Sequence record: NC_070950.1
Strand: one strand, 5' to 3'
DNA length: 64,000 nt
The translations under genes were made by a program, and so were the position numbers. Shown here piece by piece: positions 10,776-27,690 of the stretch. The notes below the pieces were generated by a model. That model did no database searches, had not been told where the DNA came from, and saw only the letters and a program-made list of their open reading frames with translations. Positions within the stretch are counted from its first letter, which is position 1. Every line of letters starts with the position of its first letter.

Positions 10776-12101
10776 ATGATTGACGTCAGTTTTCTCCGTC
10801 CTGCTAAGGTGGGTGGGATGGAGTTTATGGATTTCCAATACACCAATTTCTTCGACGAACTCAGCAGGGCCTTTGATGACGTAATTGTCGAGGGTGAATT
10901 AAAGGAAATTCCTGATGAGGTTCTTGGGCTTGTGCGCAAGTATACCGGATTTAGCAATATCGAAATTAATTTGGTCGAGGTGGGCAATCTTGCTATTGAA
11001 GCCGGGTATTTAAATCCCAATAATGTGTTCAATATTGAGGATATTGAAAAATATCTTCCTCGATCTGAGTCTACTTTGTACCGTTGGTTTACCGGAAATA
11101 AACAGACGTTCTTTAAAGGTACAATAGATTATCAAACGGGATCCGTTGGCGGTGCTTACGCCGAACTACCCTTCCGCCTATTTGTTAATTCCCGCCTTAA
11201 TACGTTTTTATCCAAATCGTTCCTGGACAAGTACAAGGCTAGTCACGGTCAGGCGTTAGCCGCTGCATTTATTCATGAGTTGGGCCACGCATTTGGCGCG
11301 ATCATGATGATCCATCAATCAGTTTACGATGCCATCACCGTAAGAACAGCGGTTGATTTCTTTACTCGAGCTAAAACGCCTAAAGATCGCGTTACCGTAA
11401 TAAAGGATGGTTACCGGTTACTCGACCCAGATGCTAAACCCGATCAGAAAATCGAAAGCGAAATCGCGAACGCCGAAGACGGTAATGAATTCGTTATTTT
11501 TCTGTCCAAGATAGCCTCGCAACGTAACCTCAAACGCAGTTTAAGCTTGGGCGTCACTAAGATGAACTCTGAGGTTGTTGCGGACGCTTATTCGGTCAGA
11601 ATGGGGTGCGGACGATCTCTTGCCGTGGCAATAGGGTCAATAACTAAGAACAGTCATTTAGGTCAGCTTGTACTTACTTTGCTGTTGTCCCTCATGACTG
11701 CGTTTTACAGCGCTTCTCTTTCTCTTACCGTCGGCGGTGTCATGGGCGTCGGCGCCCTAGTAGTCTTCTCCTTGCTTTTTTACATGGGTAACAATACGCC
11801 GGATGTCTATAATTCAGAACACCGTAGAATGACCGACATTCTTACTCAGATGATCGGCAAGCTGAAAGATAATAAATTTATTTCAGCTCAAGATAAACAA
11901 AAGTACTTGGGTCAGATTATCGAAACTCAGAAACTCATTGATGAGAACAAACCCTTCATTGAGGGTTCCGTTTTCCAATCGATGTGGATGTGGTTAAAGA
12001 GCGGATCCGATGCTAAGTTAACCAATATCGAACATTATACTTCGCTTATTGCTAACAGCAAAACGAATGTATTGTCAGAACAATTTAATTCCCTTTCCTA
12101 G
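10776..12101 (+). CDS. putative virion Zn-metallopeptidase-like protein (HExxH, M48-like; 441 aa)
   Basis: FIHELGHAF, downstream EVVADAYSVRMGCG, hydrophobic hairpin; first gene of the head-protein operon. Confidence 0.55.
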   Translation: MIDVSFLRPAKVGGMEFMDFQYTNFFDELSRAFDDVIVEGELKEIPDEVLGLVRKYTGFSNIEINLVEVGNLAIEAGYLNPNNVFNIEDIEKYLPRSESTLYRWFTGNKQTFFKGTIDYQTGSVGGAYAELPFRLFVNSRLNTFLSKSFLDKYKASHGQALAAAFIHELGHAFGAIMMIHQSVYDAITVRTAVDFFTRAKTPKDRVTVIKDGYRLLDPDAKPDQKIESEIANAEDGNEFVIFLSKIASQRNLKRSLSLGVTKMNSEVVADAYSVRMGCGRSLAVAIGSITKNSHLGQLVLTLLLSLMTAFYSASLSLTVGGVMGVGALVVFSLLFYMGNNTPDVYNSEHRRMTDILTQMIGKLKDNKFISAQDKQKYLGQIIETQKLIDENKPFIEGSVFQSMWMWLKSGSDAKLTNIEHYTSLIANSKTNVLSEQFNSLS

Positions 12102-12110
12102 AGGTATGAC

Positions 12111-12509
12111 ATGTCACATTTAGCCCACACCATCACCCTGAAGAGCAAACTCTTAGAGTTGGGGGTTACTGACCCTGCGGATCAAAAACGTATTGTTGAG
12201 AACGCTTATGTTCGTGCGCTGGTAAAATACCTGTTTACCTACAAATATGTTTTCTCCGGATACACCGAAGAAGTCGAATCCAATATTTACCGCCGTCTGG
12301 CCAAGTGGAATGAGATCTCGCCTATTAACGGCCCTTTCATTGTCGAGAAACTCAAAGCGATCGTTCGCAATCTGAAAAACGAAGCGCTGGCTGGCGGTCA
12401 GTTCACCCCAATTAAAAATGCGAACGAAACTTTCGATGAACTGAGTTCGGAAGAGTTTATCAAATTGATGGACTGGTTGTTCGGAGAGATGGTGACCGGT
12501 AATGACTGA
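12111..12509 (+). CDS. small virion/head protein (132 aa)
   Basis: GAGGT SD; lies in the head operon, coupled to the next gene. Confidence 0.6.
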   Translation: MSHLAHTITLKSKLLELGVTDPADQKRIVENAYVRALVKYLFTYKYVFSGYTEEVESNIYRRLAKWNEISPINGPFIVEKLKAIVRNLKNEALAGGQFTPIKNANETFDELSSEEFIKLMDWLFGEMVTGND

Positions 12510-14007
12510 TAAAAAAGATCCTGTTGTTACCACCTATCCTTTAATTGGAGAAGGTGGTAAAGTGGTCCCGGGAGACCAAGAAGAACAATTGATCGATCTC
12601 GACGCCGCCTACAAGAAGACAGGTGAAACGAAAACCAATGAGCTTGTAGAAGGCCTGGAGCGTTACATCAACCAAAAAATTCTCGGTAAACGGGAAATGG
12701 AATTAGCTGGAGTTAAAGGAGGGGAGAATTTTGATCCCCTCCCATCCAGACGTAATGCCGTGTTGGGAGGAGAATCTTTCCTCACCGCTGTAAAAGACGG
12801 TTTTTTGAAGATCATTGATTTCATTATCAAGTTTATCAAAGGCGCCGTTAACTGGGTTATCGAACGCATTAAAGTATTACTGGGCTTTAGTAAGACAAAG
12901 GCCGAGATTAAAGCCTGCGAAGACGCCAGATCTGATATGGAGAAAGAGGTCAAATCCACCCTGTCTGGATTCGGAATCAACCCTTCTTTCTACAGCCTGG
13001 ATCAGCTGGTTGAATCCGCGCCTCGTGGTATCGATCGGGTCGAAATGATTAAATACCTTTCAGCCAAATCTAAAAACGAAACCGAGATGGCGAAAGCACT
13101 CACTGGTGTTATTCCTGACCTGACAACACTGACCCGTAAGTTAAGAGATTCTTCCGATAGCTTGACTAAACGGTACAAGCGATTCAAAGTTGTTCTGGAA
13201 GACACCCGTAAGAAATTGGCCGCTAATAGAGTTGGAGATGCTGACGCTTACGAGCTGTCTAAAGCCATCAAAGACGTTATGGTCATTTCCGAAGACTATG
13301 GAGATGTGGTCGCTTCTTTGTCTGCGGTGGTGTCTAAACTGTATGGGGTTAATCTCGATAACTCTAAAATCCTTAAAGAGGGATTTGGTGTTTTACGAGA
13401 AAATATTGCCCGAAATCGTGCGGTCGCAACCAGTAAGCTCAATCCGGAAAAACTGACCGGTCTTTACGCTGAAATCGGAACGTTAAATAACCGGATTATT
13501 TCTGAATCGGGTAATACGTTCGATTTATCTCACGTCGACACTAAAGTTCTAAAAGAAGTGGTCTCTTTGGATGACGCCAATTTCATCAATAATTTATCTG
13601 ATGTGGTCGGTAATCGTCAACTCATCGCAGACTATCAGACCATGGCGGTTTCTGTCAGGGACTTTACTGCGATTCTGGAATCGTCTTCTGCCATTTGCGC
13701 CGACATTTCCCGTGAAATTGCCAACTTCACTAAGTGGAAAAATAACGTGGATATGTACCTCGCGGTAGCGGTCACAGAAGATCTTAAACTGATCGCTTCT
13801 ACGCTGATCGCTTCTGCGGGAGCCGGGGAATATGATCTCGACAAGTTAGGTAAGAGCAAACCTGTTGTTCTACCTGAACCCGGCCTGGTCAAGAAGACCG
13901 GTTTGATCACCCAGGAAATTCTCGACGCCGATCTCCATGGTGTTACTACCGCTGTTAACAATTTTGCGAAAACTGCGGGACTCAACGTGAGGGTTAAACC
14001 ACGATGA
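12502..14007 (+). CDS. internal head (ejection) protein with propeptide (501 aa)
   Basis: GGAG SD; G-x-E sites (VEGLER, KGGENF, LGGESF) followed by amphipathic helix KIIDFIIKFIKGAVNWVIERIK. Confidence 0.65.
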   Translation: MTDKKDPVVTTYPLIGEGGKVVPGDQEEQLIDLDAAYKKTGETKTNELVEGLERYINQKILGKREMELAGVKGGENFDPLPSRRNAVLGGESFLTAVKDGFLKIIDFIIKFIKGAVNWVIERIKVLLGFSKTKAEIKACEDARSDMEKEVKSTLSGFGINPSFYSLDQLVESAPRGIDRVEMIKYLSAKSKNETEMAKALTGVIPDLTTLTRKLRDSSDSLTKRYKRFKVVLEDTRKKLAANRVGDADAYELSKAIKDVMVISEDYGDVVASLSAVVSKLYGVNLDNSKILKEGFGVLRENIARNRAVATSKLNPEKLTGLYAEIGTLNNRIISESGNTFDLSHVDTKVLKEVVSLDDANFINNLSDVVGNRQLIADYQTMAVSVRDFTAILESSSAICADISREIANFTKWKNNVDMYLAVAVTEDLKLIASTLIASAGAGEYDLDKLGKSKPVVLPEPGLVKKTGLITQEILDADLHGVTTAVNNFAKTAGLNVRVKPR

Positions 14008-14684
14008 ACGAAACCCTAGAAAAATTGCTGAGTAACGCGCTGACCCATGACAGCGATTGGGAAGCTGACGCTCAACAATTTAAAGAAGGTATAAAGGAGA
14101 TTCATCAGCTCCTGGAACGTCGACTGGATGCCAAGCTTCTCATGGAAGCTCTCGCTTTCTTCGATGCGTGTGAAGAAACGATTATCGACGTAAGAGCCAG
14201 GATGGTAACAGGTCCTTCTAAAGTCAATAACGATCTTTTCTATAATTTCTGTAAATTTAAATACACGCAGAAAATTATGGGGATCTCAGTATTGGCGGAC
14301 GGCGTTTTAGTCGCTAAGGATTTCGATACCGCTATTGGTGCGATGGTTGATGATTTGTTTAAATCGCTTAATCAATCCACTGATAACGATCGTTTCCATA
14401 AAGCGATCTGTCTTCGTCGTGATGTGAAACGACTTAAGATTGCACTGGAAGATCCGTATACGTTTAATCTCGGTGTGGATTGGACAGTCATTGAACCAAA
14501 AGAAGATTACATTGAAGACTCGACAGATCTTGACTTCTTGAAAGAATCGAGAGAACGTCTTGCCGTCAATGAAACATCTTACGAGTTCTGGGCGATCGAA
14601 AATCGTATCCGTCAAATTACGTCGGAGAATTACATTCGTCGTTCGTTCTTAGAACGTCTTGGTCTTTACTACAAAAAAGATTAA
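14004..14684 (+). CDS. hypothetical protein (226 aa)
   Basis: ATGA coupling with the upstream gene; no motif recognised. Confidence 0.65.
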   Translation: MNETLEKLLSNALTHDSDWEADAQQFKEGIKEIHQLLERRLDAKLLMEALAFFDACEETIIDVRARMVTGPSKVNNDLFYNFCKFKYTQKIMGISVLADGVLVAKDFDTAIGAMVDDLFKSLNQSTDNDRFHKAICLRRDVKRLKIALEDPYTFNLGVDWTVIEPKEDYIEDSTDLDFLKESRERLAVNETSYEFWAIENRIRQITSENYIRRSFLERLGLYYKKD

Positions 14685-14689
14685 TGTTA

Positions 14690-14723
14690 AATACTCCTCC
14701 TACCCTAGGGTAGGAGGAGTATT
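14690..14723. terminator. perfect 34-bp palindrome between convergent genes
   Basis: AATACTCCTCCTACCCT|AGGGTAGGAGGAGTATT, no spacer; 32-nt core identical to 54122-54153. Confidence 0.8.
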
Positions 14724-14725
14724 GT

Positions 14726-17641
14726 TTAGGATTTATGCAATTTAAAGTTTAAAGTAATATCTTCAGCAATTGTCAACAACGTGTTATTGTTGTTGTTCAA
14801 CACTTTACGAATACTGAACCCGGTCGTTGCATCTTTGTTACTAATGACATCGATGCTAGTAGACCCTGCAAACGATTCCAGTTTTATATCAACCACATCG
14901 TCACCAGAAATATCTTTAAGTGCGGAGATAAGACTGGAGTTAGAAATGGTTGAGTTGGCCAGCATGTTGTTGATAGTCTCGGGATATGTGTTAGCGAGAC
15001 TGGTCTGCAACGCATCCGACTCATACCCATTTTTGGTTAAGTAAACCGTAATGGAGAAACTGAGATCGCTCCTAATCGTCGTTTCGATATCAGCGTTGAT
15101 GATGACATCGATATTCCCGATCTTAGCTTTAGGAAGAAACTTGACTTTGGTTTCGTCCAGGCTTCGATTGTTAATCGCTGTCATATCTTGCTTGATATTA
15201 TCAGTCAGATAGGTTTTGGTCGACTCATCGAAATCTTTATCGTACGTATCGGTCGTGAAGAAGTAAGAGCCATCAAACCCTAAGAAGTCGAAGCTGTACT
15301 GCAGCTTCCTAGGTTCAACTTCCACGTTGTTACCGTCGGCGTCTTTAACAAAATCGCCGATGAGATATTTGTACGTCGGATTACCTTGAGCATCCAGAAT
15401 AGGGTCACCTTTCTTATGCAAGAAGATCGGAAGACCATCATTGCCTAAAACCAGTTTCCCTTCGGCATCACGCTGAGGATAATCTTTATCATAAGTATCC
15501 GGAACGTTATAAGTGTACTTCTGATAACGCGCGTCGCCAGTGATCGGTCGGATACGAGTGTACATGTAATCGAGGCTCTGACCTAGAGTAATGTTCCACT
15601 GCGTTTCGATAATCGCTTGCATATCAGCAGAGAAAAGACTAGAGGCGATCTTGTTGTCGCTATCTGATCTGTTCGTTGCATCATCAGTAGTTTTTAACAG
15701 AAGGAAACTGAATGCGTTAGTCAGACTACTTGGGATATTATTTGCGTCCGCGTCGTACTGAGTCAGGTTGTTAAGATAAAGCAAATCGTTGTTATCGATG
15801 TCAAAGTTGCTCGATAATACAAACTGCCAAATCCTTTCACCGGAACTGTTGACCCCTACCAATTCACCCTTAACAGATGCGAGCGCTGCTGCGTTAGCTG
15901 GGGTGAAACAGAGTTGTGCTCCGACCTCACTATCCTCCAAAGCCTTGTACTCTTTACCAGACTTACAAACAAGAGTAAAGACGTAGCCCGTTTTCGTTAC
16001 GGAGACGTTAATACTTGATACGCCGAGCTCTATCCCCAGGTTGGTGTTCTCGTATAAGAATCTCTGGTAGTTGCCGGTAGGAGAATCCATCCGGTACATT
16101 CTTAACGACGCTTGATTGTCGGTAAGATCCATGACGTAATGGAACGGAGTGTAAACCAACGCATTCCCATTGACATAGTTGGAAATAGCCTCAAACCCAG
16201 AATTCTGGATGGCGGTTAATTCCGTTAAGGGAACTATCCTGGTCGTCGTTTTCGAAATATCGAATACCGTCCTGCTCGGTATAGTGATCCGTTCGCCATT
16301 GTCAAACACCATTCCTGTCGCTACCAAATCTTCGGCACTTTGCAGAATCGATCCGATGTAGGTGTTCATGCTAGAAACCATCCCGTCTTTATTAGACTGA
16401 GCTGGAAGATCTCTGGACGCCTTGTACAGACGATTGGTGATGTAATCAATGGAAAGTACTTCGTCGTAACCACGGTCTTCAATATTGTAAGAATATTGAT
16501 TAGGGGTAATCGGTAAGCTATCCCGGCGGTTGCCGTAGATGCTCGCTCGACGAACACTTTCAAAACTACGAGGATTGGCTCCGCCGGTTACAGCGTTGAC
16601 AGTAATCCAGGCTTGGTTATTCGCACTCAACAATGGCGAGGAGTACACGCCCAATTGGTTGTTGTCGTAATTATAGTCGAGATATTCCGGTGTGTGATCT
16701 GCAACACTGATCGTTTTGAGATCCTGCTCGTAATAACCGACGGTCGTATAAACGTACAACGCGATCTTACCTACGCCCAATCCGCTCGTTATATACGCAA
16801 CCGGAACTTCATAGGTAAACGAACCGTTATCATTATCCAGGGAGATAACCAAAGTCGGTACAGTCGTATCGAAGTTGGCTTTGTTGTAACTAATAGCCAT
16901 CTCGGCAGTACTGCCGTCTGAATAAGTGATAAAGGCACGGATGGCGTAAAGATAGTTACTGAAATAAAAGGTGTCTTTAGCCAAGCCGGAGGCTGCCGTT
17001 GTCGCGATATTGAACTTAGGCGTGTTGTTCAATTGACGAACAGGAACGAGGATGCGGAGGAACTTAACGTTGCTGATAACAACGTAGTCGGTATCCAGTA
17101 CGTTCTCTGAAATTGGATTGAGCGGATTGTTGACAGTTGAATCATAAACAACGCTATGACCGCCGTGTTCCATTAAACGAATTTCGAAACCGTTTTCAAT
17201 ACTGAAGTAAGTGGAGTTAACCAAAATTCGAGTATCTTTAGGAACTAACAGTTTCCGATATTTGTTTACTACCGCCCCATCTTCTTCCTGGTAGTCAACA
17301 GCCAAACGTTTTATCTCACTCACTGGAATAAGATAAGCCATCGTTGTACTGCTAGGAACACCGAGCAAACCGTACCATTCTTCGTCAGATAGATTACGGC
17401 TGAGATCAGACATGTTCCTCGCCTGGTTTTTATACATCTGAGCAGCTGCGTCACTATGACGACTCAGCAGTGTATACGCCTCACCCACGATCATATCCAT
17501 AGCCGTGATAAATGGATGCGTGGGGCTATTAAAGGCAATGTTTTTACCTGACCATGCATCTTCGATCATGGAAAGTACGTTAGGAATAACTCGAGTGGGG
17601 TTATTCGATATTTTTTCTAAGTCGGAGTAGGAATAACTCAT
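14726..17641 (-). CDS. baseplate wedge protein candidate (T4 gp6 / P2 gpJ-like), 971 aa
   Basis: GGANPRSFESVRRA...ITPNQY matches the baseplate-J GG-x-x-x-E-S-x-E-x-x-R...T-x-x-D/Q-Y pattern; size and synteny fit phiKZ-like baseplate genes. Confidence 0.6.
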   Translation of the reverse strand: MSYSYSDLEKISNNPTRVIPNVLSMIEDAWSGKNIAFNSPTHPFITAMDMIVGEAYTLLSRHSDAAAQMYKNQARNMSDLSRNLSDEEWYGLLGVPSSTTMAYLIPVSEIKRLAVDYQEEDGAVVNKYRKLLVPKDTRILVNSTYFSIENGFEIRLMEHGGHSVVYDSTVNNPLNPISENVLDTDYVVISNVKFLRILVPVRQLNNTPKFNIATTAASGLAKDTFYFSNYLYAIRAFITYSDGSTAEMAISYNKANFDTTVPTLVISLDNDNGSFTYEVPVAYITSGLGVGKIALYVYTTVGYYEQDLKTISVADHTPEYLDYNYDNNQLGVYSSPLLSANNQAWITVNAVTGGANPRSFESVRRASIYGNRRDSLPITPNQYSYNIEDRGYDEVLSIDYITNRLYKASRDLPAQSNKDGMVSSMNTYIGSILQSAEDLVATGMVFDNGERITIPSRTVFDISKTTTRIVPLTELTAIQNSGFEAISNYVNGNALVYTPFHYVMDLTDNQASLRMYRMDSPTGNYQRFLYENTNLGIELGVSSINVSVTKTGYVFTLVCKSGKEYKALEDSEVGAQLCFTPANAAALASVKGELVGVNSSGERIWQFVLSSNFDIDNNDLLYLNNLTQYDADANNIPSSLTNAFSFLLLKTTDDATNRSDSDNKIASSLFSADMQAIIETQWNITLGQSLDYMYTRIRPITGDARYQKYTYNVPDTYDKDYPQRDAEGKLVLGNDGLPIFLHKKGDPILDAQGNPTYKYLIGDFVKDADGNNVEVEPRKLQYSFDFLGFDGSYFFTTDTYDKDFDESTKTYLTDNIKQDMTAINNRSLDETKVKFLPKAKIGNIDVIINADIETTIRSDLSFSITVYLTKNGYESDALQTSLANTYPETINNMLANSTISNSSLISALKDISGDDVVDIKLESFAGSTSIDVISNKDATTGFSIRKVLNNNNNTLLTIAEDITLNFKLHKS

Positions 17642-18672
17642 TTAGCAGTCCACCATTCTAATTCCATGGTACTTAAGTTTATCCAAGGATAAACGTTGTA
17701 TTGTTTTTCTAAGAATTCACTAGGTTGTATTTGACGATAGTAAGAGGAACGCTGGTCATCACCCATGTTCGGATTAAAGAATACGGTAGCGCCATTAAAT
17801 CCGTCAACGACCTCAAATGTATCGAACCTCGCCCCAACACTACTGAACTGAATTGTCAGTTCATCTTGTCCTTGACCGCGTCTGACAGTACTCTCGTTAT
17901 CAATCGCCGACATAGCACCCATGGGGTAGGTTACGGGGATGGATTGAACTGTCATGTACATGCTTTCTATATTTCGTAAGTTTTTGTTCATAATGAAATG
18001 ATAGATGCGACAGTCGAAATCCCAGTAGTTACCGGCCAGCGCCTCAAGAGAAGGCTCCATCTCATTATCACCTAATCTCACTTCGGGAATATAGCTTTCC
18101 CAAGTTTGGAAGATATAGGGAATAATACCTGGTTTTGGATTATAGAACGTCGTATTGATCGTCAGCGGTCCGTTCTCATCCAAAATCCCAACCGGGGCCT
18201 GATGGACCTCGTTACGAATTCCCGGATTACTTTTCCTGACTTCTAAATCTAAATCAGGGAACCCGTTACTGGCTTTACATAAGTTAGTTAGCGGCGCAAT
18301 CCAGGCTAATTTATTGTCGAGATCCGGATGCGGATAAAGGTTAGCTGAGCGATAATCCAATAACCCCCTGACATAAGCAGGAAGGCTATCAGTTTGTGCT
18401 TTATAGAAAGGGGCGAATCGAGGAGATTTTACAACGTTATCGTCTTCGAGATTTAAAACAGGGCGGGTGACGAAAAATAATCCTATGACGTTGTCTGCAA
18501 TAGGCGTCATCTGTACGCCTGGTCCCAGAATACGGATTCCCTTTAAAGTATTTGCGAGGGGTGATGTATAGGAGGAACCTCCATTTGCTGTAAACACATC
18601 ATCAAAGATGCTCAACCTGTCCGTTAGGGCTTCTCCAGTGAAGTTCTCGGAACTATTGAATTTGATATCCAT
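17638..18672 (-). CDS. tail-tube-fold / baseplate tube-initiator candidate (344 aa)
   Basis: Overlaps the 971-aa gene by 4 nt; W..Y...RIYHF...PVTYP...ELTIQF resembles tube/T4 gp54-type proteins. Confidence 0.45.
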   Translation of the reverse strand: MDIKFNSSENFTGEALTDRLSIFDDVFTANGGSSYTSPLANTLKGIRILGPGVQMTPIADNVIGLFFVTRPVLNLEDDNVVKSPRFAPFYKAQTDSLPAYVRGLLDYRSANLYPHPDLDNKLAWIAPLTNLCKASNGFPDLDLEVRKSNPGIRNEVHQAPVGILDENGPLTINTTFYNPKPGIIPYIFQTWESYIPEVRLGDNEMEPSLEALAGNYWDFDCRIYHFIMNKNLRNIESMYMTVQSIPVTYPMGAMSAIDNESTVRRGQGQDELTIQFSSVGARFDTFEVVDGFNGATVFFNPNMGDDQRSSYYRQIQPSEFLEKQYNVYPWINLSTMELEWWTAK

Positions 18673-18700
18673 TATTTATTTCCAAAAAAGAGGAACGACT

Positions 18701-19816
18701 ATGATCACCGCTGTGCTGTCCTGGGCATCCGCTATTATTAGCTTAGCTAAGATGCTTAATCCTGACAACAAAAACTACGATGAGAGCAAAAAGGTCATTG
18801 ATAAATTGGGTAGTGTGGCCGGAATCGTCAGCACGAGTTCCGCAGCTAAGTCAGCGCAACGCGCCATTATCAACCCGATGGTTGTGGTGGAGCGGCCGCT
18901 CCTCCACCAAGAATATATGAATGAACTTTTAACGATCATACAATTACGCGACATCATGAACGTCCTGACCCACCTGAGTTTGCAGGGTGAAGTTGGCGGC
19001 GTTAAGATCGCTAAACTGATCGAAGGCATTAACCCGTCCCGTTCTGGTTTCCTTTCGCTGATGGGCGCCGAGTCTTTTGGTGGAACCAACATTCTTCCAC
19101 CGGTGGCTGGGGCCGAAGCCGATCTGGTTACCGTTAAAGATAAAGACGGTGTGATGATCGACACTAAACTTCAAAATACCCTCAACGAATATTCCCCGCT
19201 CGCTCTGGGTAAAGTCGTTGGCGCCGAAGTTATCATCGATGGTAAACGCAACACGTTCCCACTGGTATTCCGCCAGGTCCCGGTTCCTGCGGATACCAAA
19301 CAGCTTGAGAACGTATTCCAGGTAGCCAAGCCCGAAGACGGCCTGCGCATGCGTATCATGATGCTCAAAACAGGCGAAATCACACCTGCCGAGTTCCTTA
19401 CCGGTAGCGATCTGGTTAAGAAAGAATTCGCCGTTCGTAAGAACGATTTGACCGGGTACTACGAAGAAGCGCAAAAACGTGCGACTCGTAATCGTGTTGA
19501 GGCTATTCGCACTGGCGAAGCTTCCATGAACACAATGGCGAACGTCTTCGTTATGTCTTCCGATACCGCTCGTCAGATCGAGCTTGAAATCGGCTTACGT
19601 TTTGCCAACGCCTCTTCCCGTGACCGCATTTTCAGCAAAACCGTCGCTAACACCATTGTGGTGGTTAACGAAGGCCGCGGTATATTTACGTTCTACACTC
19701 ATGGCCAGGATATGCCGGAAGTGTACACGCGTTCAGAAATCAAAGTGAAGGCTGCTAAAGATACCTCTTCTAACAGTCTGCAAGATTTGCTTAAACTCTT
19801 TAACGGTGGTGTATAA
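18701..19816 (+). CDS. internal head protein (371 aa)
   Basis: Start reassigned to the ATG at 18701 (GAGGA SD); G-x-E sites MGAESF and AGAEAD; first gene of the inner-head operon. Confidence 0.65.
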   Translation: MITAVLSWASAIISLAKMLNPDNKNYDESKKVIDKLGSVAGIVSTSSAAKSAQRAIINPMVVVERPLLHQEYMNELLTIIQLRDIMNVLTHLSLQGEVGGVKIAKLIEGINPSRSGFLSLMGAESFGGTNILPPVAGAEADLVTVKDKDGVMIDTKLQNTLNEYSPLALGKVVGAEVIIDGKRNTFPLVFRQVPVPADTKQLENVFQVAKPEDGLRMRIMMLKTGEITPAEFLTGSDLVKKEFAVRKNDLTGYYEEAQKRATRNRVEAIRTGEASMNTMANVFVMSSDTARQIELEIGLRFANASSRDRIFSKTVANTIVVVNEGRGIFTFYTHGQDMPEVYTRSEIKVKAAKDTSSNSLQDLLKLFNGGV

Positions 19817-20691
19817 TGGATCTGGTGAAATACGCTAAAGGCGTAAAGTCGCTTAAAAAGAAAGACGTCTACGATACAATCGCGTTACAGAAAGGCATGG
19901 TGAACACGATCAAAAACATGCTCGCCCTCAACGCCAGTAACGACGTCGGATACGACCAGTACGCTCAGCGCTGGGCACTGACCAAAGGGATCCTCAAAGA
20001 CGTTGGCCGTCGGGTAACTAATCCGACCATGACCGACATTTTTGTCGATTCGATTAAAGGGATCGAATTCATCCTGTCTCGTCTGGAACAACAGGCCAAA
20101 GGCATCGACGATACCATTGACGGAACAACCCTGACCATCAAAGAAACCAACATCCTGATCATCCTGGATAACATTGGTTTTTGGACAGGTTACACTCTGG
20201 ACCTGGTGGAAGTCCTTTCTTCTTTTGCGCTGGAAGGCAAAGAAGATGAGCGCGGTATTAATAAAGCCGACCTGACTTTCCTTAATAAGACTTGGTCTTA
20301 TTATTCCGATCTCTCGGTTCAGTTCATGGCTGAGCCCGACCAGATCGTTCGTCGTTTAGAGAAACTTTCTGACGTGCCGGCGGATCAGGATAGCGTGGAT
20401 ATTGTTCAGAACGCCAAAGGTCGTGATGCTGTTAACGCGATGAGAGGGTTCGGGATTCATACCGTTCTGCCGGCCTACTGGATTCTCGATATTAAGAAAA
20501 ATATCGATCTCGGTCGTATCAAAGCTAATCAGAAGCGCATCGAAATTCACTCGATGAAACTTGAGCAGCTGATGAACAAACGTAATGGTAGCAACGATCC
20601 TCACTTGGATCGCCAGATTGAAATCTACCAAAACGACATCATCAAGGCTAAGGCTAAAATCGAAGATATCGTTGAAAGTTATCAGGTGTAA
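19816..20691 (+). CDS. head/inner-body protein (291 aa)
   Basis: TAATG overlap with the upstream gene; coiled-coil C-terminus; synteny with the phiKZ gp89-gp97 cluster. Confidence 0.6.
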   Translation: MDLVKYAKGVKSLKKKDVYDTIALQKGMVNTIKNMLALNASNDVGYDQYAQRWALTKGILKDVGRRVTNPTMTDIFVDSIKGIEFILSRLEQQAKGIDDTIDGTTLTIKETNILIILDNIGFWTGYTLDLVEVLSSFALEGKEDERGINKADLTFLNKTWSYYSDLSVQFMAEPDQIVRRLEKLSDVPADQDSVDIVQNAKGRDAVNAMRGFGIHTVLPAYWILDIKKNIDLGRIKANQKRIEIHSMKLEQLMNKRNGSNDPHLDRQIEIYQNDIIKAKAKIEDIVESYQV

Positions 20692-20702
20692 GGGAGTCCA
20701 TT

Positions 20703-21218
20703 ATGCCGAATTACCGTTCGAGCAAATACGGTATGGTGAGTGCTGATCTTTTAGATCCCTCCCTTACCGCTGTTAACGATCTATTAAAACTCTATCTCAG
20801 AAATGCGGGCCAAGATTTCGAATTCGGCATTGCGCCTAAGAACATTCAGGAAGCGTTTCGGAATGTCAACACGCTGATGGCTAATGACTTCCGTGCTTGG
20901 CTGGCGGCTAACTACAACGATGGCGTCGGGCTACGATCAGATATGGTTCGTCGAATCCTGGGTTTTCTTTCTGGTGAACTGACGGGTCAGCTGGTCGTAG
21001 AAGGCATCCGGATGGACCAGATCAAGGTCAGACATCTGAAACGCATCGGTGGAGAGGCTAAACCTTATCTCCCTGCCCCTGCCAAAAGAAATGAAAAATG
21101 GCATGATGCCCTGAACAATGTCTTACCTAACGATTTCTACAGTTTGGTAGAAGGTATCGGCTTGCAGGCATTAGTTTGTTTAATGCTGACGTTAAGTGGG
21201 GAAACAGGCGATGTCTGA
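20703..21218 (+). CDS. head protein (171 aa)
   Basis: GGGAG SD; within the head operon. Confidence 0.6.
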   Translation: MPNYRSSKYGMVSADLLDPSLTAVNDLLKLYLRNAGQDFEFGIAPKNIQEAFRNVNTLMANDFRAWLAANYNDGVGLRSDMVRRILGFLSGELTGQLVVEGIRMDQIKVRHLKRIGGEAKPYLPAPAKRNEKWHDALNNVLPNDFYSLVEGIGLQALVCLMLTLSGETGDV

Positions 21219-22506
21219 TGTCGATAAGATTTCAAAAGAACTTTCGGAGATTTCCATTACTCACTCTTCCGAGTTAATCGAAGCTGCCGAAGAATCCAAC
21301 CAGATGGCCGAATTTGCCGATCGACTTTCTGAGTCGGCTGACAGGGCTTTGGTTATAAAAGAAATGCTTCAGAACGTTAACCCTACCGCGGTAACCGTTT
21401 CTTTTGGTTCAGCCATTGATAAACAGTTAAACCGTATTGGGGTGATGGACGTCATTAATAAGACGTCAGCTGACGTTTTAGGCGCAGAAGCGTTGGGAAG
21501 AACCCTGATGCCTTCGGCCTATCTCCAAAGCCGTATAGCCGGCTGTGAGTCTTTTATCGGCGATGCCTTATCCAAGGCTAAGAAAATGCTGATAGCGGCG
21601 TCTGAGGGCATTAGGGACCGTTATATTCTCATTAAGGAATCTAATCGTTCTTTGGCAAGAAGAATTCTCTTAGTAGAAGAGAAGTTGAGTAAAGCCCCAG
21701 GTCCTTTAGTTCACGGTCAGTTTAAAATTAAACTTGATCGTAATCCTCGGCTTTTCCTGGTTGATGGCGTGGTTAAAGAGCAGTGGGGAGCACAACTTGA
21801 GCGAGTAGATAAATCCATTTCTGCGCTTATGTCGAACTACTACAAAAATAACCGCAGTTCTATCAACGAACTTCTTTCTTATTTCGGCGGGTTCTCCCAT
21901 CTCGAAGAAGACCGTGCTATCGAACGTCTTTTGTCCATGCCGAGCATGATCAGCCATTACACCTTTAAGGAATGTTTATATCCCAACCGGGAGCTTTCTA
22001 AGGATGGTGTGAGGGTAATGCAGTCGGTGGAACTTATGGGCGGCCGTCGTTTCCTTAACGCGGTGTATGAGAAGAAACCAAAGCAGTTTGAGTCTCTGGA
22101 AGAACTCTCCCGGTATTTCACCCAGATCCTTGAAAACGAATACGTTAAGTTCGTTGCCACCGAAAAAGTTGAATTGAATAAAGATATTGAGATCTCCAGT
22201 CTCTCTACTTTAGAGATCAAGGTTATTCTTAAACTCTGTTCAGGTATCCTTGATAAAACAGAAAGCCTGTTCAGCGAAGGCGATCAGTATTCGGTGGAAG
22301 GAAAGGATTATTTGGAAATGATTAACGTCATTTCTGATAACAACTGGGATGACAAACTCAAGTCTACCGTCGTCAGGTATTTCGAACAGCTCGCTTTGAA
22401 ATATAATAAAGAGATGCTGAACAACCGTGTGGCGGTGGTGGAATACCTGACCCTGCTTATCAATGGACTGTTAAACATCGCTGAACGTAGTATAGACGGC
22501 GAATAG
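21211..22506 (+). CDS. phiKZ-like internal head protein paralog (431 aa)
   Basis: Start likely 21211; acidic propeptide, G-x-E sites (LGAEAL, AGCESF), then amphipathic helix. Confidence 0.65.
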   Translation: MSDVDKISKELSEISITHSSELIEAAEESNQMAEFADRLSESADRALVIKEMLQNVNPTAVTVSFGSAIDKQLNRIGVMDVINKTSADVLGAEALGRTLMPSAYLQSRIAGCESFIGDALSKAKKMLIAASEGIRDRYILIKESNRSLARRILLVEEKLSKAPGPLVHGQFKIKLDRNPRLFLVDGVVKEQWGAQLERVDKSISALMSNYYKNNRSSINELLSYFGGFSHLEEDRAIERLLSMPSMISHYTFKECLYPNRELSKDGVRVMQSVELMGGRRFLNAVYEKKPKQFESLEELSRYFTQILENEYVKFVATEKVELNKDIEISSLSTLEIKVILKLCSGILDKTESLFSEGDQYSVEGKDYLEMINVISDNNWDDKLKSTVVRYFEQLALKYNKEMLNNRVAVVEYLTLLINGLLNIAERSIDGE

Positions 22507-22514
22507 GGGGTATC

Positions 22515-23489
22515 ATGTCGCTAGAGCGCATTATGCTTTCTAAAAAGGCACAGGGCCAACATCAGGACTTGATGGATGCGTTGAACCAATTTAACGTCGT
22601 TATGGGAAACGAAACCCTATTTGACGACGTTAAGCTTATCGGGACGAACGTATTATCCCGATCTGCGGTGTTGGCTGGAAAAGGTATAACTGAGTTGAAC
22701 AATCTCTTTACTGTTGGTACTCGTAAGGCCATGGTGAAATTTGGGACTAATCGTCAGGCGATCTCTGTTTTATCCAGGGATGTCCCTAAACGAGAGCTCA
22801 AAGAAGAGGTTGTTCTTCCAGCATCTTTTGTCAACAACGTGACCTCAGAGGGCGATCTGAGTACGGTTATCGACGATACGCGAGCCCTCGGCCAAACGTT
22901 GGATTTGTTGGTCCGTCACCTCAATGACATCGACGGATACCTGAAACAACAACTGGGTTACGTAAAGGATATTGGAAACGTTCGTACTAACGATCAGGGC
23001 GTGGCTTTGATTCAGAAATACGATAAGTTATCTTATCCTCCCTTACAGCTGCCCATTCATGCTAATTTTATAGCCTCTTCGCACCCCTTGCCCGGAGGGA
23101 AGATTTTAACCTACGATGATAAACGTCATGTTTATTCTATGTCTGGTAAAAAGCCCCACGGCGAATCCCAACCTTATCCTGCTCAATTAGATACGGTTGG
23201 ATGGTTACGAGCGGTTAATGGCGTCAACGATCATTTACAGCGCTTAATCAAGTATATGTACGAGTACAATACTTTTGTTAAGAACTGGGCTAGTGCGGTG
23301 AAATCAGCGTATCCCCATCTTGAAAGAGAAGATAACCTGAGTGAGTCCGTTTCTAAGCAGCTCGAAAGAATGCTTGATGGTAACGTCAACATTATGCAAT
23401 TGTATAGCGGATTACTCCCTCGTCTTATTGGATACACGGATAAGTATATCCAGGATGTGTTAGGGTCCGTCAACAAACTTCTTAATTAA
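22515..23489 (+). CDS. phiKZ-like internal head protein paralog (324 aa)
   Basis: AGGGGG SD; short propeptide ending MGNETL; similar layout to neighbours. Confidence 0.6.
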   Translation: MSLERIMLSKKAQGQHQDLMDALNQFNVVMGNETLFDDVKLIGTNVLSRSAVLAGKGITELNNLFTVGTRKAMVKFGTNRQAISVLSRDVPKRELKEEVVLPASFVNNVTSEGDLSTVIDDTRALGQTLDLLVRHLNDIDGYLKQQLGYVKDIGNVRTNDQGVALIQKYDKLSYPPLQLPIHANFIASSHPLPGGKILTYDDKRHVYSMSGKKPHGESQPYPAQLDTVGWLRAVNGVNDHLQRLIKYMYEYNTFVKNWASAVKSAYPHLEREDNLSESVSKQLERMLDGNVNIMQLYSGLLPRLIGYTDKYIQDVLGSVNKLLN

Positions 23490-23526
23490 TAAGTTTTACA
23501 TCAAATCTCTCTAGAGGATTTAAATA

Positions 23527-24792
23527 ATGAGTAAATTGTTTCTGGATCTGCTGGCTCGTCAGGGCAACGAAAACCTGGAAATCGAACTGGGTAATGGCGA
23601 TACCGCTGTAATCGTTCCTGAGTCGGCCGAAGAAATCGCTGAAATGGCTGCTGAAAACGTCCTCGCTGAAACTTCCGAAGAACTGGAAGAACACGCCGAT
23701 GACGTTGAAGACCTGTGCGACAAAGTTGAAGAACTGGAAGAGCAGGTTGAAGAACTGCAAGAAGTCGTTGAAGGCGCCGAAGCCCTCCTGCAACCGGGTA
23801 CCCAGTGGAACCCTGCTGCATTCGCCCTGCTGTACGCCCGCGGTGAAAAACTGAACGCCAAAATGAGCGATACCGCTGTCCCGGTTATGGGTGCGGAATC
23901 TCTGGCTGACGCGACTACCGCCGAACTGTCTGCTCGTGAAGGCCTGGAAGCTATGGGCGCCACCGTGAAAAAATGGGGCTCTCAGGCGATCGCTTTCATC
24001 AAGAAAATCTGGGATAGCCTGATCGCTTTCATCAAAGGCCTGTTCTCCAAAGCCACCGCGGTTAAGAACAAAGCGAAAGCTGTTGCCGCTCGCCTGGAAA
24101 AAACCGAAAAACTGAAAGAAACCATCAAGCTGGGCAAATGGAACGCGTTTGTCGGTGTTGGCGAAGGTCAGCCTAAATCTGCAACCGGTCTGTCCACTCT
24201 GATCGGCGCTGCCGGTAAAGTGGTAGCGGGTTCTGAAGCTCTGCTGTCTTCTCCGGGTAACGCCGCTGCGCTGGCAGGTCCGGTTAAAGAACTGAGCTCC
24301 GCAGCAGCTGGCCTGGACTCTGTTTTCGGCCCGGCTAAGAAAGCTGGCGGCGACAAAGCCGTTGCCGCTCACCAGTGGCGTGGTCTGACCATCGCGGTCG
24401 GTTATTACGCTGGTAAAGTCGAAACCTTCGAAGATGTTGCGAAAGCCGCTAAAGCCATCCGCATCTCCTGGAAAGTTTCCGGCGGTAAAACCTCTGGCGA
24501 ACACAAAGTCACCGACGGCAAAGACGCGCTGAAAAAATACATCAGCGACGCCAACGCTCTGGTTGACTCCATCGCTTCTTCTAAAGTTGAAGCGCAGTAT
24601 GGCGCGGCTAAACGCGATCGTATCATCGGCCTGCTGAAAGCAGCTGATACCAAAGACGGCGAAGACGTGGGTAAAGCAGTTAACGCAGTGAAAGCTGCTC
24701 AGACCGCTCTGTCCTCTGTAACGACCTCTGCGACCCGTCTGGGCCTGGCTATCGCTAACGGCGAACTCGACTACGTACGTGCTTGCCTGTAA
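23527..24792 (+). CDS. abundant phiKZ-like internal head protein (421 aa)
   Basis: GAGGA SD; very acidic propeptide with four G-x-E sites; helix AIAFIKKIWDSLIAFIKGLF; strong optimal-codon bias like the capsid gene. Confidence 0.75.
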   Translation: MSKLFLDLLARQGNENLEIELGNGDTAVIVPESAEEIAEMAAENVLAETSEELEEHADDVEDLCDKVEELEEQVEELQEVVEGAEALLQPGTQWNPAAFALLYARGEKLNAKMSDTAVPVMGAESLADATTAELSAREGLEAMGATVKKWGSQAIAFIKKIWDSLIAFIKGLFSKATAVKNKAKAVAARLEKTEKLKETIKLGKWNAFVGVGEGQPKSATGLSTLIGAAGKVVAGSEALLSSPGNAAALAGPVKELSSAAAGLDSVFGPAKKAGGDKAVAAHQWRGLTIAVGYYAGKVETFEDVAKAAKAIRISWKVSGGKTSGEHKVTDGKDALKKYISDANALVDSIASSKVEAQYGAAKRDRIIGLLKAADTKDGEDVGKAVNAVKAAQTALSSVTTSATRLGLAIANGELDYVRACL

Positions 24793-24820
24793 TCCCTCGG
24801 GATGGTTGTTTAAATCAAGA

Positions 24821-24846
24821 GAGGGGAGTCCTTAGGGGCTCCCCTC
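24821..24846 (+). terminator. rho-independent terminator
   Basis: GAGGGGAGTCC-TTAG-GGGCTCCCCTC stem followed by CCTATTTT. Confidence 0.7.
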
Positions 24847-24870
24847 CCTATTTTGCATTTGAGAGGATTT

Positions 24871-25944
24871 ATGTCTACCCCTTACACTCAAAAAGGCATG
24901 TCCATGTCTCTCGCAGAAGAATACGAGGGAGATAAAAAGAAATTAGATCGTTACATTGAAGGTACCCCCGATAACGTAGAGCGGTATAAAAAGGTGGCAG
25001 CGGTTATCGGTAAAGAACCCGGCCATGTTACTGACGATAAAGATACAATAGACAATACCGCCGGCACAGAAGAATTTGATATCGACGAAGCCGTTCTTAA
25101 TTTCCCAGAAGATGAGAATGTTGCTGGGATGGAAGACTTCGTAGAGTTTGCCAAGAAGGCAATAGTTCGATTAATGCGAATGATCAAGAATGCGGCTATC
25201 TTCATCTACGAGCTCGTCTTTAACAAGGTTAGTCGCATCAAACACATCGCCCGTAAAGCAGAGTATCAATTAAGAACGCAGAGTCTGATACCTACTCTCG
25301 TACCTTACCCCAAAGGGACCCGTAAGATATTCATAGGGCCGGCTTTACAGACCAACGCTAATTGGACGCTTAAGAGTATTCAGCAGGTTCAACTGTTTTA
25401 TACCAGGTTGATGAAAGCGCACGGTAATTTATTGGATGCGGCTAAATCGGGTAATTGGAGAAACAACCCTAATTTCATTTTTGAAACAGCGGCTACGTTC
25501 GCTAATGAAATTTGCCAGAATCATCACAGTGATTATTCTGAAACCCAAGTTCTCCCAGGCGGGAAAATCTACAGGGTGAATTATTCCAAAGGCAGTGGAA
25601 AAAATCGTCCTGGTGTTTCCCTTAGCCAGAAACTCTCCGTTCAACTTAAGGATAAATCATTTAAGCCGGATAGAGCGATTGCTGACGACCTCATGACAGC
25701 CCTGCAGGGATTCGCTGATAAGATCGGTAACGATCATCGCAGTCAAACCAGCACTTCCAGAAAAATGGAAGCGGCGATAAGAGACCTGGAACGTTATTAT
25801 GTCGATCCTGAGGCAAAACGCCATGCGGCGGCTTACTTCACTTGGTTGATTGATTTCCAACGTACGGTTCTGAGCACTGGTCTTCAGTATGTTTTCGGAA
25901 CCCTGTTCGGTTATGCTGAATTCATTTCGGCTAATGTTAAGTAG
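24871..25944 (+). CDS. phiKZ-like internal head protein paralog (357 aa)
   Basis: Start reassigned to the ATG at 24871 (GAGAGGA SD); AGTEEF and AGMEDF sites, then amphipathic helix. Confidence 0.65.
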   Translation: MSTPYTQKGMSMSLAEEYEGDKKKLDRYIEGTPDNVERYKKVAAVIGKEPGHVTDDKDTIDNTAGTEEFDIDEAVLNFPEDENVAGMEDFVEFAKKAIVRLMRMIKNAAIFIYELVFNKVSRIKHIARKAEYQLRTQSLIPTLVPYPKGTRKIFIGPALQTNANWTLKSIQQVQLFYTRLMKAHGNLLDAAKSGNWRNNPNFIFETAATFANEICQNHHSDYSETQVLPGGKIYRVNYSKGSGKNRPGVSLSQKLSVQLKDKSFKPDRAIADDLMTALQGFADKIGNDHRSQTSTSRKMEAAIRDLERYYVDPEAKRHAAAYFTWLIDFQRTVLSTGLQYVFGTLFGYAEFISANVK

Positions 25945-25952
25945 AGGTAGTT

Positions 25953-26363
25953 ATGTCAGCTGGTGTTATTAGCAAGAACATGTGGGTGAGTCTACTCTCT
26001 AAAGCCCTCAACGCCGATGCAAGTGTATTAAAATCTCAGACGTTTGTTTTTTCGCCGAGTAGCTCTGACGACCTAGTTAGAATTAGCGACGTTAGAGGTC
26101 CCGATTCCCCCGTTGTAATGAAGAAGTTTGATTTCGGCAAACTCACCTACGGGAGAAAGTTCGACGTTCGGCACATTCTTCAGGATTCTGAAAACAAAAC
26201 AGCCGATGAGATTTTTGAATATTGGAAGAAATTGGTGCGACTCGATGACCTTGATCGCGGCGAGGTTGATTTGGTTAAAGACGAGTCGATCCTTTATATC
26301 TATTTCAAATCTTCATCTATCTGTTTCAAAGGAAGCGTTGAGGTGACGTATGCGGATCGGTAA
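25953..26363 (+). CDS. small virion protein (136 aa), S-x-x-F/Y-x-G-S domain family
   Basis: GAGGT SD; C-terminal SSSICFKGSVEV shared with ORFs 27697 and 51162. Confidence 0.6.
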   Translation: MSAGVISKNMWVSLLSKALNADASVLKSQTFVFSPSSSDDLVRISDVRGPDSPVVMKKFDFGKLTYGRKFDVRHILQDSENKTADEIFEYWKKLVRLDDLDRGEVDLVKDESILYIYFKSSSICFKGSVEVTYADR

Positions 26364-27690
26364 TTATTTATTTCAAAACATACGTACCGCTTTGACCCTA
26401 TTGGGTATTGTGTTTCAGATTCAAACGAGGAAACCTACTCAAGAAGAGTCAGATATTCTCGTTAACGGATTCAGGGAACTTGACGTTTCTCCTGCAGTTT
26501 ATCAAGAAAACGCATTACTGGCCTTACAGCTAGTGATTAAACGTTATATAGAGGATCTGGAAGCGTCTTTCTATGAACTGAGTCAATTACACGGATTAGT
26601 GCCAAAATCGCTTCATAGCGTATTAGGCGAGCTTATAGAGGGAATTAAGAAAACAAACAGCGACGACCTCGTTGAATATTTCGATGAAGGGTTGTTAAAA
26701 GAACACTCCATTCGCAGTTTGTTTACCCCTACCCCTGAAGACGAACTCGTCATTTCCGAGCATTACGAGACATTAAAAAGTCTTTATAACGAAACCGTTA
26801 CTAATCTCCTCGACGAATTAGAAGACACCATTGACCCTTCGATTCTTCCGATAATAGAGGATGGGGTACGCGATCTTAATTTGATCGAATTTATTTTACA
26901 GTATTTCGAATTGTCTAATTACGACAATGTCTCGGAGGAAGAGATGAAATATAGTCAGGTTAAAGCCAAACTTGATGAAATTGAAACTGCGGTCATTAGT
27001 GGTGCGGAAGAATTCAAAACCCTCATTAACGATTCTCCAGTATCGGGAATGGAAGCCGGGTTTGTTGACACTGTTAAAGCCGGAATCGCCAAAGTCGTTG
27101 ACACTATCAAGACTGCGCTGAAAACTCTTCTCGATTTCTTTGCTGGACGTAAGAAAGATGCCGCGGCTCAGATCGCAGATATCAAAGAGAAGTTCAATAA
27201 GCAAATCGAAGATCTGAAGGCGGCTGGTAACGACAAGCTTGAGATAGATCAAGAGAATATTAAGAAAACCATTGATATGTTGGAGAAGGCTGATCTTAGC
27301 GAAGTCGCCAATCATTTCAAAGGGGTGAACGATGCAACAGGTGCTATCTCAGCGTACACCGCGGCATTGTCTGATCTGGAAAAACTCTGCAAGCCGGATG
27401 ACGCCGATAAACAATTGGGTGATACTCAAACTAAACTCAATGAACTTTCCGGGACTCAGGTCAACGTGAACAACGACGCGCCAGCAGAAGAGAAGTCGAC
27501 CCTGAAAGAGGTCGTTGGCGAGCGCACCAAAGCTCTACAAGAGAAGTTCGCAGAAGCCAAAGAGAGTGTGAAGAATTTTATCAAACCTCTGTCCGCCATG
27601 GAGCGTCTCAATAGTACTCTGGGTAAAGTCATCAAAAAGAAATCAGAGAAGGAAGAAAAAGTCTCTGGTAACGAAGCCTGGATGGAGTAA
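26350..27690 (+). CDS. head protein (446 aa) with possible internal in-frame start at 26944
   Basis: GAGGTG SD; C-terminal half has SGAEEF and SGMEAG sites, an amphipathic helix and terminal SGNEAWME. Confidence 0.65.
   Translation: MRIGNYLFQNIRTALTLLGIVFQIQTRKPTQEESDILVNGFRELDVSPAVYQENALLALQLVIKRYIEDLEASFYELSQLHGLVPKSLHSVLGELIEGIKKTNSDDLVEYFDEGLLKEHSIRSLFTPTPEDELVISEHYETLKSLYNETVTNLLDELEDTIDPSILPIIEDGVRDLNLIEFILQYFELSNYDNVSEEEMKYSQVKAKLDEIETAVISGAEEFKTLINDSPVSGMEAGFVDTVKAGIAKVVDTIKTALKTLLDFFAGRKKDAAAQIADIKEKFNKQIEDLKAAGNDKLEIDQENIKKTIDMLEKADLSEVANHFKGVNDATGAISAYTAALSDLEKLCKPDDADKQLGDTQTKLNELSGTQVNVNNDAPAEEKSTLKEVVGERTKALQEKFAEAKESVKNFIKPLSAMERLNSTLGKVIKKKSEKEEKVSGNEAWME

Follow-up and report, generated by a model that had tools for sequence, protein, structure and literature searches.

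Processed internal head proteins are known from the phages phiKZ, 201phi2-1, SPN3US and Goslar. In phiKZ, gp86 is a helix bundle, modelled from beside its mapped cleavage site, that touches five of the six subunits of hexamer 1 (Yang et al., PMC11297242), and its Goslar homologue gp65 holds the same position in the same inner-wall helix-bundle complex. In SPN3US, mass spectrometry has placed protease cuts at ARE-12, AQE-95 and AQE-125 of gp53, and at AQE-124 and ARE-137 of gp54 (PMC10052503, Table 2). Here we describe six genes, gp015, gp022, gp023, gp024, gp025 and gp027, in bases 1–64000 of Klebsiella phage Miami (MT701590 / NC_070950; this stretch, which is 100% identical to the record and keeps its coordinates, is ‘the window’ below), a chimallin-encoding, nucleus-forming jumbo phage whose nuclear shell protein is annotated at 231943–233955. 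The six are probably internal head proteins that Miami processes by proteolysis, like those of the four phages above, and they fall in known families.

An initial annotation had proposed that each of the six proteins exposes a cationic amphipathic helix right after its last cleavage site. The observation holds for four of these proteins and extends to gp279, a gene outside the window. By profile comparison, the site and the helix that follows it (helix 1) are one homologous module of about 45 residues. We consider it probable that helix 1 serves a structural role, as the first helix of a bundle in a processed internal head protein. The genes and modules are as follows.

gp015, 12502–14007, plus strand: predicted orthologue, from gene order and an AlphaFold2 (AF2) model, of phiKZ gp86, Goslar gp65 and SPN3US gp47, a vertex-binding-complex protein of the inner capsid wall; module (site G89-G-E91 and helix 1) at 12766–12894, quoted helix at 12802–12885
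gp022, 21211–22506, plus strand: PF12699 (phiKZ_IP) internal head protein; site G111-C-E113 at 21541–21549, quoted helix at 21553–21600
gp023, 22515–23489, plus strand: conserved cluster protein; site G31-N-E33 at 22605–22613, quoted helix at 22617–22661
gp024, 23527–24792, plus strand: PF12699 internal head protein and gp022 paralogue, with relatives that include SPN3US gp53 and gp54, phiKZ gp93 and Goslar gp58; module (site G139-L-E141 and helix 1) at 23941–24069, quoted helix at 23974–24045
gp025, 24871–25944, plus strand: module (site G86-M-E88 and helix) at 25126–25254, quoted helix at 25147–25221
gp027, 26350–27690, plus strand: module (site G233-M-E235 and helix) at 27046–27174, quoted helix at 27073–27141
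gp279, 229566–230561 of the Miami record (locus L012, 3067–4062), outside the window, minus strand: 331 residues, annotated as hypothetical; matched by the module profile

The PF12699 matches of gp022 (176.3 bits) and gp024 (170.2 bits) stand far above the Pfam gathering score of 27, and Pfam gave zero matches for gp015, gp023, gp025 and gp027. PHROGs labels gp015, gp022 and gp024 as head or virion proteins.

A shared module of cleavage site and first helix

Across families the module follows the pattern G-x-E/[GSA]-F-x-D-x-[VI]-K (the slash marks the cut) and continues as a helix. When gp015, gp024, gp025 and gp027 are compared pairwise with hhalign, the best local match always lies on the site and helix, at 57–95%: gp025 matches gp024 at 92% and gp027 at 93%, both over this region, and residues 231–268 of gp027 match residues 137–173 of gp024 at 94.9%. 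For gp015, gp023, gp025 and gp027, similarity to gp024 is restricted to the site-plus-helix region. The paralogues gp022 and gp024 match over most of the length of gp022 (95.8%). Most of the weak matches of gp022 and gp023 (0.4–20%) again fall on the site and helix, with gp022 versus gp023 and gp023 versus gp024 as exceptions.

A profile of the module (50 positions, from 23 sequences of four families in five phages) recovered the four Miami members, including gp025 (E 8e-16) and gp027 (E 3.9e-18), and also found gp279, which was absent from its training, at E 1.5e-11. Within residues 1–46 of gp279 stand three [AG]-N-E motifs, and after them comes a helix with a hydrophobic moment (muH) of 0.73 and a charge of +3. 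Miami gp022 and gp023 went unmatched by this profile, gp023 gaining a marginal match through its RisingSun orthologue alone (E 0.0055). Matches numbered six in EL, ten in RisingSun, five in FishSpeaker and one, weak, in phiKZ; SPN3US gave no match to the profile, and the motifs of phiKZ and SPN3US have diverged. Taken together, these profile results indicate that the module is common to gp015, gp024, gp025, gp027 and gp279, is weaker in gp022 and is marginal in gp023.

As to the surroundings of gp279, a virion protein gene adjoins it and the chimallin gene is near by; in EL, the counterpart is gp165. In RisingSun (NC_042018), five matches lie outside the four training families, at 5643, 8476, 68053, 69002 and 165379, and the gp023 orthologue supplies a sixth extra match, a weak one. 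Processed head proteins would therefore outnumber the six listed here and vary more between relatives than these six suggest.

The module is kept in five lineages for gp025, and in the gp015 family it is the most conserved stretch of 40 residues. Near-invariant positions in the latter are N85, G89, E91, F93, W118 and G128, and I108 and I109 are conserved as well. Such residue-specific conservation in the alignments fits specific packing or recognition rather than generic amphipathicity.

Conserved protease motifs

A homologue of the phiKZ prohead protease gp175 is encoded at 197002–197655 of the Miami record (35% identity, E 1.3e-21). For gp015, a word-based protein search found five relatives and a profile search gave 74 matches, and 66 sequences (15–58% identity) were analysed; the gp024 family sample comprised 17 relatives. 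The gp015 motif at residues 89–91 is kept in 64 of the 66 relatives, motifs upstream of it in 40–44, and each downstream motif in six or fewer (9% or less). In the gp024 family, the motifs at 13–15, 83–85, 122–124 and 139–141 are kept in all 17 relatives and every other motif in at most five (29% or less). In both families, gp015 and gp024, no conserved protease motif follows the G-x-E that stands before the helix. The site of gp022, A-G-C-E followed by S/G-F, is the same in four of five lineages, FishSpeaker having T-A-C-E; the gp023 G-x-E is kept in five lineages; and site plus helix persist at about 30% identity in EL, RisingSun, pTD1 and FishSpeaker.

Described relatives show the same arrangement. 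The last mapped cut of SPN3US gp53 and of gp54 directly precedes the top amphipathic 18-mer of the protein (muH 0.74 and 0.76, respectively). In phiKZ, for which we took cleavage sites as quoted in secondary papers, gp86, gp93, gp95 and gp97 each have an S-x-E with their first- or second-ranked amphipathic helix close behind it; gp94 and gp96 are arranged alike when read by eye across a printed window edge. We infer that the Miami sites are cleaved; their assignment as the last cleavage sites is well supported because a protease homologue is present, because the gp015 and gp024 motifs are retained as described, and because SPN3US offers a direct parallel. The six peptides quoted in the initial annotation are all found in the named open reading frames (ORFs), the positions given for them being gene starts rather than helix positions. 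Between G-x-E and the quoted peptide lie one to nine residues, so that the helix follows the site closely and ‘right after’ holds loosely.

A further gene, gp013 (10776–12101), has an acidic amphipathic helix after G14-M-E16. Its SPN3US counterpart gp45 is cut at ASE-20 (PMC10052503), and by this analogy gp013 probably also sheds a short pro-piece.

Conservation centred on the site could have another source. The residues flanking the cut and helix 1 might together form a docking element that is read by the prohead protease, the assembly core or the scaffold, and whose job is over at maturation. Conservation is indeed highest at the site itself and just beyond it on the P′ side (N at P7, G at P3, E at P1 and F at P2′), the same P′ pattern recurs in unrelated-looking families, SPN3US shows preferences at P4 and P1′, and a truncated SPN3US gp47 is still packaged with its processing incomplete (PMC5694885). 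However, the internal sites of the pro-regions are also conserved, and are cut in SPN3US, yet have no helix beside them, and maturation leaves helix 1 itself in place, ordered in the case of gp86. We regard this docking role as quite improbable.

Structural models of gp015 and gp024

Fold models were built for gp015 and gp024. The AF2 model of gp015 (66 sequences; predicted local distance difference test, pLDDT, 76; predicted template modelling score, pTM, 0.71) has one long helix at residues 83–156, with pLDDT of 90–92 at residues 100–120 and confidence below 50 at residues 80–90, around the cut. Against about 48,000 PDB representatives, its best structural match was 8y6v_G, which is phiKZ gp86 (Z 13.0, root-mean-square deviation 4.2, 282 of 297 residues); the next match scored 8.8. 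Residues 95–495 of the model superpose on residues 120–419 of 8y6v_G, that is, from four residues past the cut. Because the model superposes on gp86, and gp86 and gp65 sit in the inner-wall bundle complex, the post-cut helix of gp015 most likely opens a folded bundle that is attached to the capsid wall.

The AF2 model of gp024 (17 sequences, pLDDT 79, pTM 0.70) contains an acidic helix at residues 34–88 and a 64-residue helix at residues 129–192 that runs through the cut site. The mature part, residues 142–421, aligns to residues 120–383 of phiKZ gp86 (Z 8.8), and the top generic bundle matches span residues 30–421 as one bundle, acidic helix included. A Foldseek search of the PDB gave no significant match for gp024; its rows for the pore toxin AhlB are weak (E 0.7–0.9) and are not evidence. 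Profiles of the gp024 and gp015 families compared with PDB sequence profiles matched generic coiled coils alone, and a profile search of viral contigs with the gp015 alignment returned zero relatives. We infer burial of helix 1 in gp024, from its model, and likewise in gp025 and gp027.

It may be added that AlphaFold draws the helices of both proteins unbroken through or into the cut region (through G139-L-E141 in gp024; at low confidence in gp015). The protease needs an extended substrate, and the site region must therefore be locally unfolded in the prohead.

The organization that we propose is the following. The precursor would begin with an acidic N-terminal region in which the prohead protease has one to four conserved G-x-E sites, and the last conserved site would lead immediately into helix 1, some 30–40 residues long, lysine-striped, aromatic-rich and amphipathic. 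The remainder of the protein would be an elongated helical bundle of the PF12699 kind. Helix 1 would be amphipathic because its wide hydrophobic face packs into this bundle and against capsid-wall neighbours, while its lysine stripe would face solvent or DNA. The N-terminal region most likely serves in targeting into the prohead, possibly as capsid cement, and in offsetting the charge of the basic mature domain. The acidic helix of gp024 appears to be part of the same bundle in the precursor model, and the last cut would divide the two parts.

Several points weigh against this structural reading. The link between gp015 and gp86 rests on synteny and fold; the 66-sequence gp015 profile found no sequence match to 8y6v_G at E ≤ 1, and Z scores of about 9–13 can arise between unrelated long helical bundles. 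The packing of helix 1 is read from the fold alignment and model confidence, gp025 and gp027 being outside the modelled set. Helix 1 is also more hydrophobic than an ordinary bundle helix needs to be. Finally, SPN3US gp47, a presumed ejection protein, carries a transmembrane-like segment at the position of the module (PMC5694885).

Acidic pro-regions

The initial annotation also described the proteins as pro-forms, and this anatomy is borne out: the N-termini are acidic, carry conserved G-x-E motifs and have the last of these at the start of the helix. Net charges of the N-terminal parts are −29 (gp024), −27 (gp027), −12 (gp025), −8 (gp022), −4 (gp015) and −1 (gp023). The acidic gp024 helix (55 residues, net −22) is itself amphipathic and complementary in charge to helix 1 (net +9); the two may well pair.

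In phiKZ, N-terminal pieces of gp93 (from residue 14) and gp162 (residues 18–137) stay on the capsid lattice as cement, and gp162 also contributes an acidic helix to the gp86 bundle of the capsid structure. This helix, residues 163–181 (net −7), lies between cleavage sites of gp162 (locus L026, 2067–3635) and resembles a pro-region helix docking in trans on a bundle with a basic first helix. We had considered whether the gp162 helix that docks into gp86 could be a cationic post-cut helix, and rejected this in view of its acidity.

Amphipathicity and charge of the helices

Hydrophobic moments were calculated for 18-mers on the Fauchere-Pliska scale, against a background of 19,061 windows from 54 ORFs in which the 99th percentile is 0.545. 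Four of the six quoted helices exceed this value, with muH of 0.64 in gp015, 0.70 in gp024, 0.59 in gp025 and 0.63 in gp027. These rank in the top 0.01–0.3% of 18-mers in the window, gp024 being in the top 0.01%. The quoted peptides of gp022 (muH 0.39) and gp023 (muH 0.35, net charge 0) fall below it, and neither is the top helix of its protein. The post-site helix of gp022 is weakly amphipathic in Miami and its orthologues (muH 0.39–0.57), while the post-site stretch of gp023 (muH 0.32–0.42) has no amphipathic helix. The description of six cationic amphipathic helices thus applies to gp015, gp024, gp025 and gp027, weakly to gp022 and not to gp023. All quoted peptides except that of gp023 carry net charges of +2 to +4, while the best 18-mer in orthologues ranges from −2 to +3, and ‘cationic’ is a tendency of these helices with no fixed rule.

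Among the 222 [SAG]-x-E motifs in ORFs of the window, nine have an 18-mer of muH ≥ 0.58 and hydrophobicity (H) ≥ 0.40 within 16 residues, and five of these nine fall in four of the six proteins. A chance origin of the pairing was considered and is ruled out by conservation. Within the gp015 family, the helix is the most amphipathic 18-mer of the whole protein in 51 of the 66 relatives. The most hydrophobic 18-mer of each protein also lies in helix 1 (H 0.84–0.86, versus 0.52 and 0.71 for the next helix).

In T4, the internal proteins are basic and accompany the DNA. By this parallel, the lysine stripe might bind and neutralize packaged DNA, with the acidic pro-region as a charge mask that leaves the head before packaging. 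The mature parts of gp024 and gp025 are indeed strongly basic (+17 each, versus −29 and −12 for their pro-regions), and lysines recur every three to four residues along helix 1. Against this, mature gp015, gp022 and gp027 are near neutral (+4, −1 and −3), the pro-fragments of phiKZ remain in the capsid, and the very wide aromatic face and the invariant W and G are left unexplained. DNA binding as the role of helix 1 is thus very improbable.

A proposed membrane role for helix 1

It had further been proposed that maturation arms these proteins for insertion into the host inner membrane, with burial of the helices in structures or models and a lack of lipid binding as the outcome that would speak against it. 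This claim is not supported. For gp015 the structural part of that outcome is predicted, its model superposing on the gp86 bundle with the helix inside (the gp024 model likewise has the helix in a bundle), and transmembrane helices were considered and rejected, the Hessa-type free energy of 19-mers never falling below +2.4 kcal/mol in 83 relatives. A buried helix may nevertheless be compatible with a later switch from bundle to membrane. In that case, helix 1 would stay packed, or covered by the acidic pro-region, up to maturation and ejection; the bundle would then open, and the helices would come to lie at a membrane interface, either that of the host inner membrane or that of the early infection vesicle, where they might anchor the ejected DNA–protein mass or shape or permeabilize the vesicle. 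We consider this unlikely overall.

Several physical properties suit a membrane helix: in the four strong helices the moments of 0.59–0.70 combine with H of 0.44–0.66 and charges of +1 to +3; a HeliQuest-type discriminant reaches 1.55–1.65 for gp024 and gp025; estimated interfacial free energies are favourable (medians of −5.7 and −8.2 kcal/mol per 18-mer); and in each protein no other helix is as hydrophobic as helix 1. The segment of SPN3US gp47 mentioned above follows the cut, and its authors speculated in 2017 on contact with the host membrane (PMC5694885). Observations on infected cells point the same way: injected phiKZ gp93 co-purifies with host membrane proteins, lipid gathers at the injection site without new protein synthesis, and Goslar gp58 remains with the vesicle remnant after the DNA has departed. 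The role of the PF12699 proteins has been termed an unsolved mystery (2026 Goslar preprint).

On the other side, the gp015 counterpart is a fixed component of the capsid wall in two cryo-electron microscopy structures, the residue-specific conservation points to packing or recognition, and a transmembrane-like helix is absent from all 83 relatives. Conservation does not extend to the positive charge, and gp022 and gp023 do not fit. A cytoplasmic truncated gp93 was the negative control for scoring the membrane partners of injected phiKZ gp93. By our own reasoning, helices wedged into the luminal leaflet would oppose inward budding.

In its most specific form, this idea would make the module a maturation-gated membrane anchor: once the pro-helices are cut off, hundreds to thousands of ejected copies of helix 1 would sit in the luminal leaflet of the vesicle, tethering the DNA–protein mass and possibly giving permeability to nucleotides and mRNA. 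Such an anchor is rather unlikely. A full-text literature search found no paper joining ‘amphipathic’, ‘inner body’ and ‘jumbo phage’.

Gene order and start sites

The surroundings of gp015 are conserved. Miami, EL, RisingSun, pTD1, FishSpeaker, SPN3US and phiKZ have a common gene order, consisting of DNA polymerase, a gp013-like gene, a gp014-like gene, the gp015 position and then two minus-strand genes. At the slot of the DNA polymerase, which is on the minus strand in the relatives, Miami has a ribonuclease. Mechanical ORF calling places two starts upstream of those in the record, namely a GTG at 21196 (versus 21211) for gp022 and a TTG at 24853 (versus 24871) for gp025. We used the ATG starts of the record for both genes, which have annotated ribosome-binding sites.

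Comparison with known systems

Describing the shared module explicitly seems to be a new contribution, if a modest one. As a mark of processed head proteins across families, the last protease site with helix 1 offers a handle for finding the full set, and it found gp279; its delimitation also supplies precise residues to mutate. The module bears on the role of the high-copy, injected PF12699 proteins and on how the early infection vesicle is made, supplied with nucleotides and left by mRNA. A membrane role cannot be read from sequence alone, and the one family with a solved structure uses the helix in a capsid-wall bundle.

With colicin pore domains, the Bcl-2 family, apolipoproteins and perilipins, the Miami proteins share a very hydrophobic helix inside a soluble bundle, and with the pro-forms of cationic membrane-active peptides they share an acidic pro-part beside a basic amphipathic part. 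These likenesses to membrane-switching bundles and peptides are resemblance only, as the Miami helix belongs to a folded protein of 270–410 residues rather than being a free peptide. Among the structural matches none stood out; AhlB, TIP47 and designed lytic bundles were seen among generic bundle matches only.

The internal proteins of T4 are similar in that the prohead protease removes N-terminal pro-pieces after a glutamate and the mature forms are basic, co-packaged with the DNA and ejected. However, the T4 pro-pieces have 10–20 residues, whereas those described here have 33–235, and the T4 proteins are not known to have a conserved post-cut helix module; in phiKZ, moreover, some pro-pieces stay as capsid cement.

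Within the jumbo phages the correspondence is closer. Relative to phiKZ gp86, Goslar gp65, SPN3US gp47 and 201phi2-1 gp148 (PDB 8Y6V chain G for the solved structure), gp015 has the same place in the gene cluster and the same predicted elongated bundle fold, and it likewise has a pro-region ending at [SAG]-x-E and a mature chain that opens with an amphipathic helix. The motif differs, being G-x-E in Miami, S-x-E in phiKZ and A-x-E in SPN3US, and a transmembrane-like segment in SPN3US gp47 contrasts with a lysine-striped amphipathic helix in the gp015 family. The cleavage and capsid location of Miami gp015 are here predictions from sequence and model. Finally, gp022 and gp024 belong to the same Pfam family, PF12699, as the inner-body proteins of phiKZ (gp92–97, gp162 and gp163), SPN3US (gp53 and gp54) and Goslar (gp53–58), with which they share long acidic pro-regions with several conserved sites, the relatives being high-copy, injected proteins. 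As in SPN3US gp53 and gp54, where it has been mapped, the last cut would fall directly before the most amphipathic helix; gp025, gp027 and gp279 have the site-plus-helix module in common with these PF12699 proteins, but not the Pfam domain.

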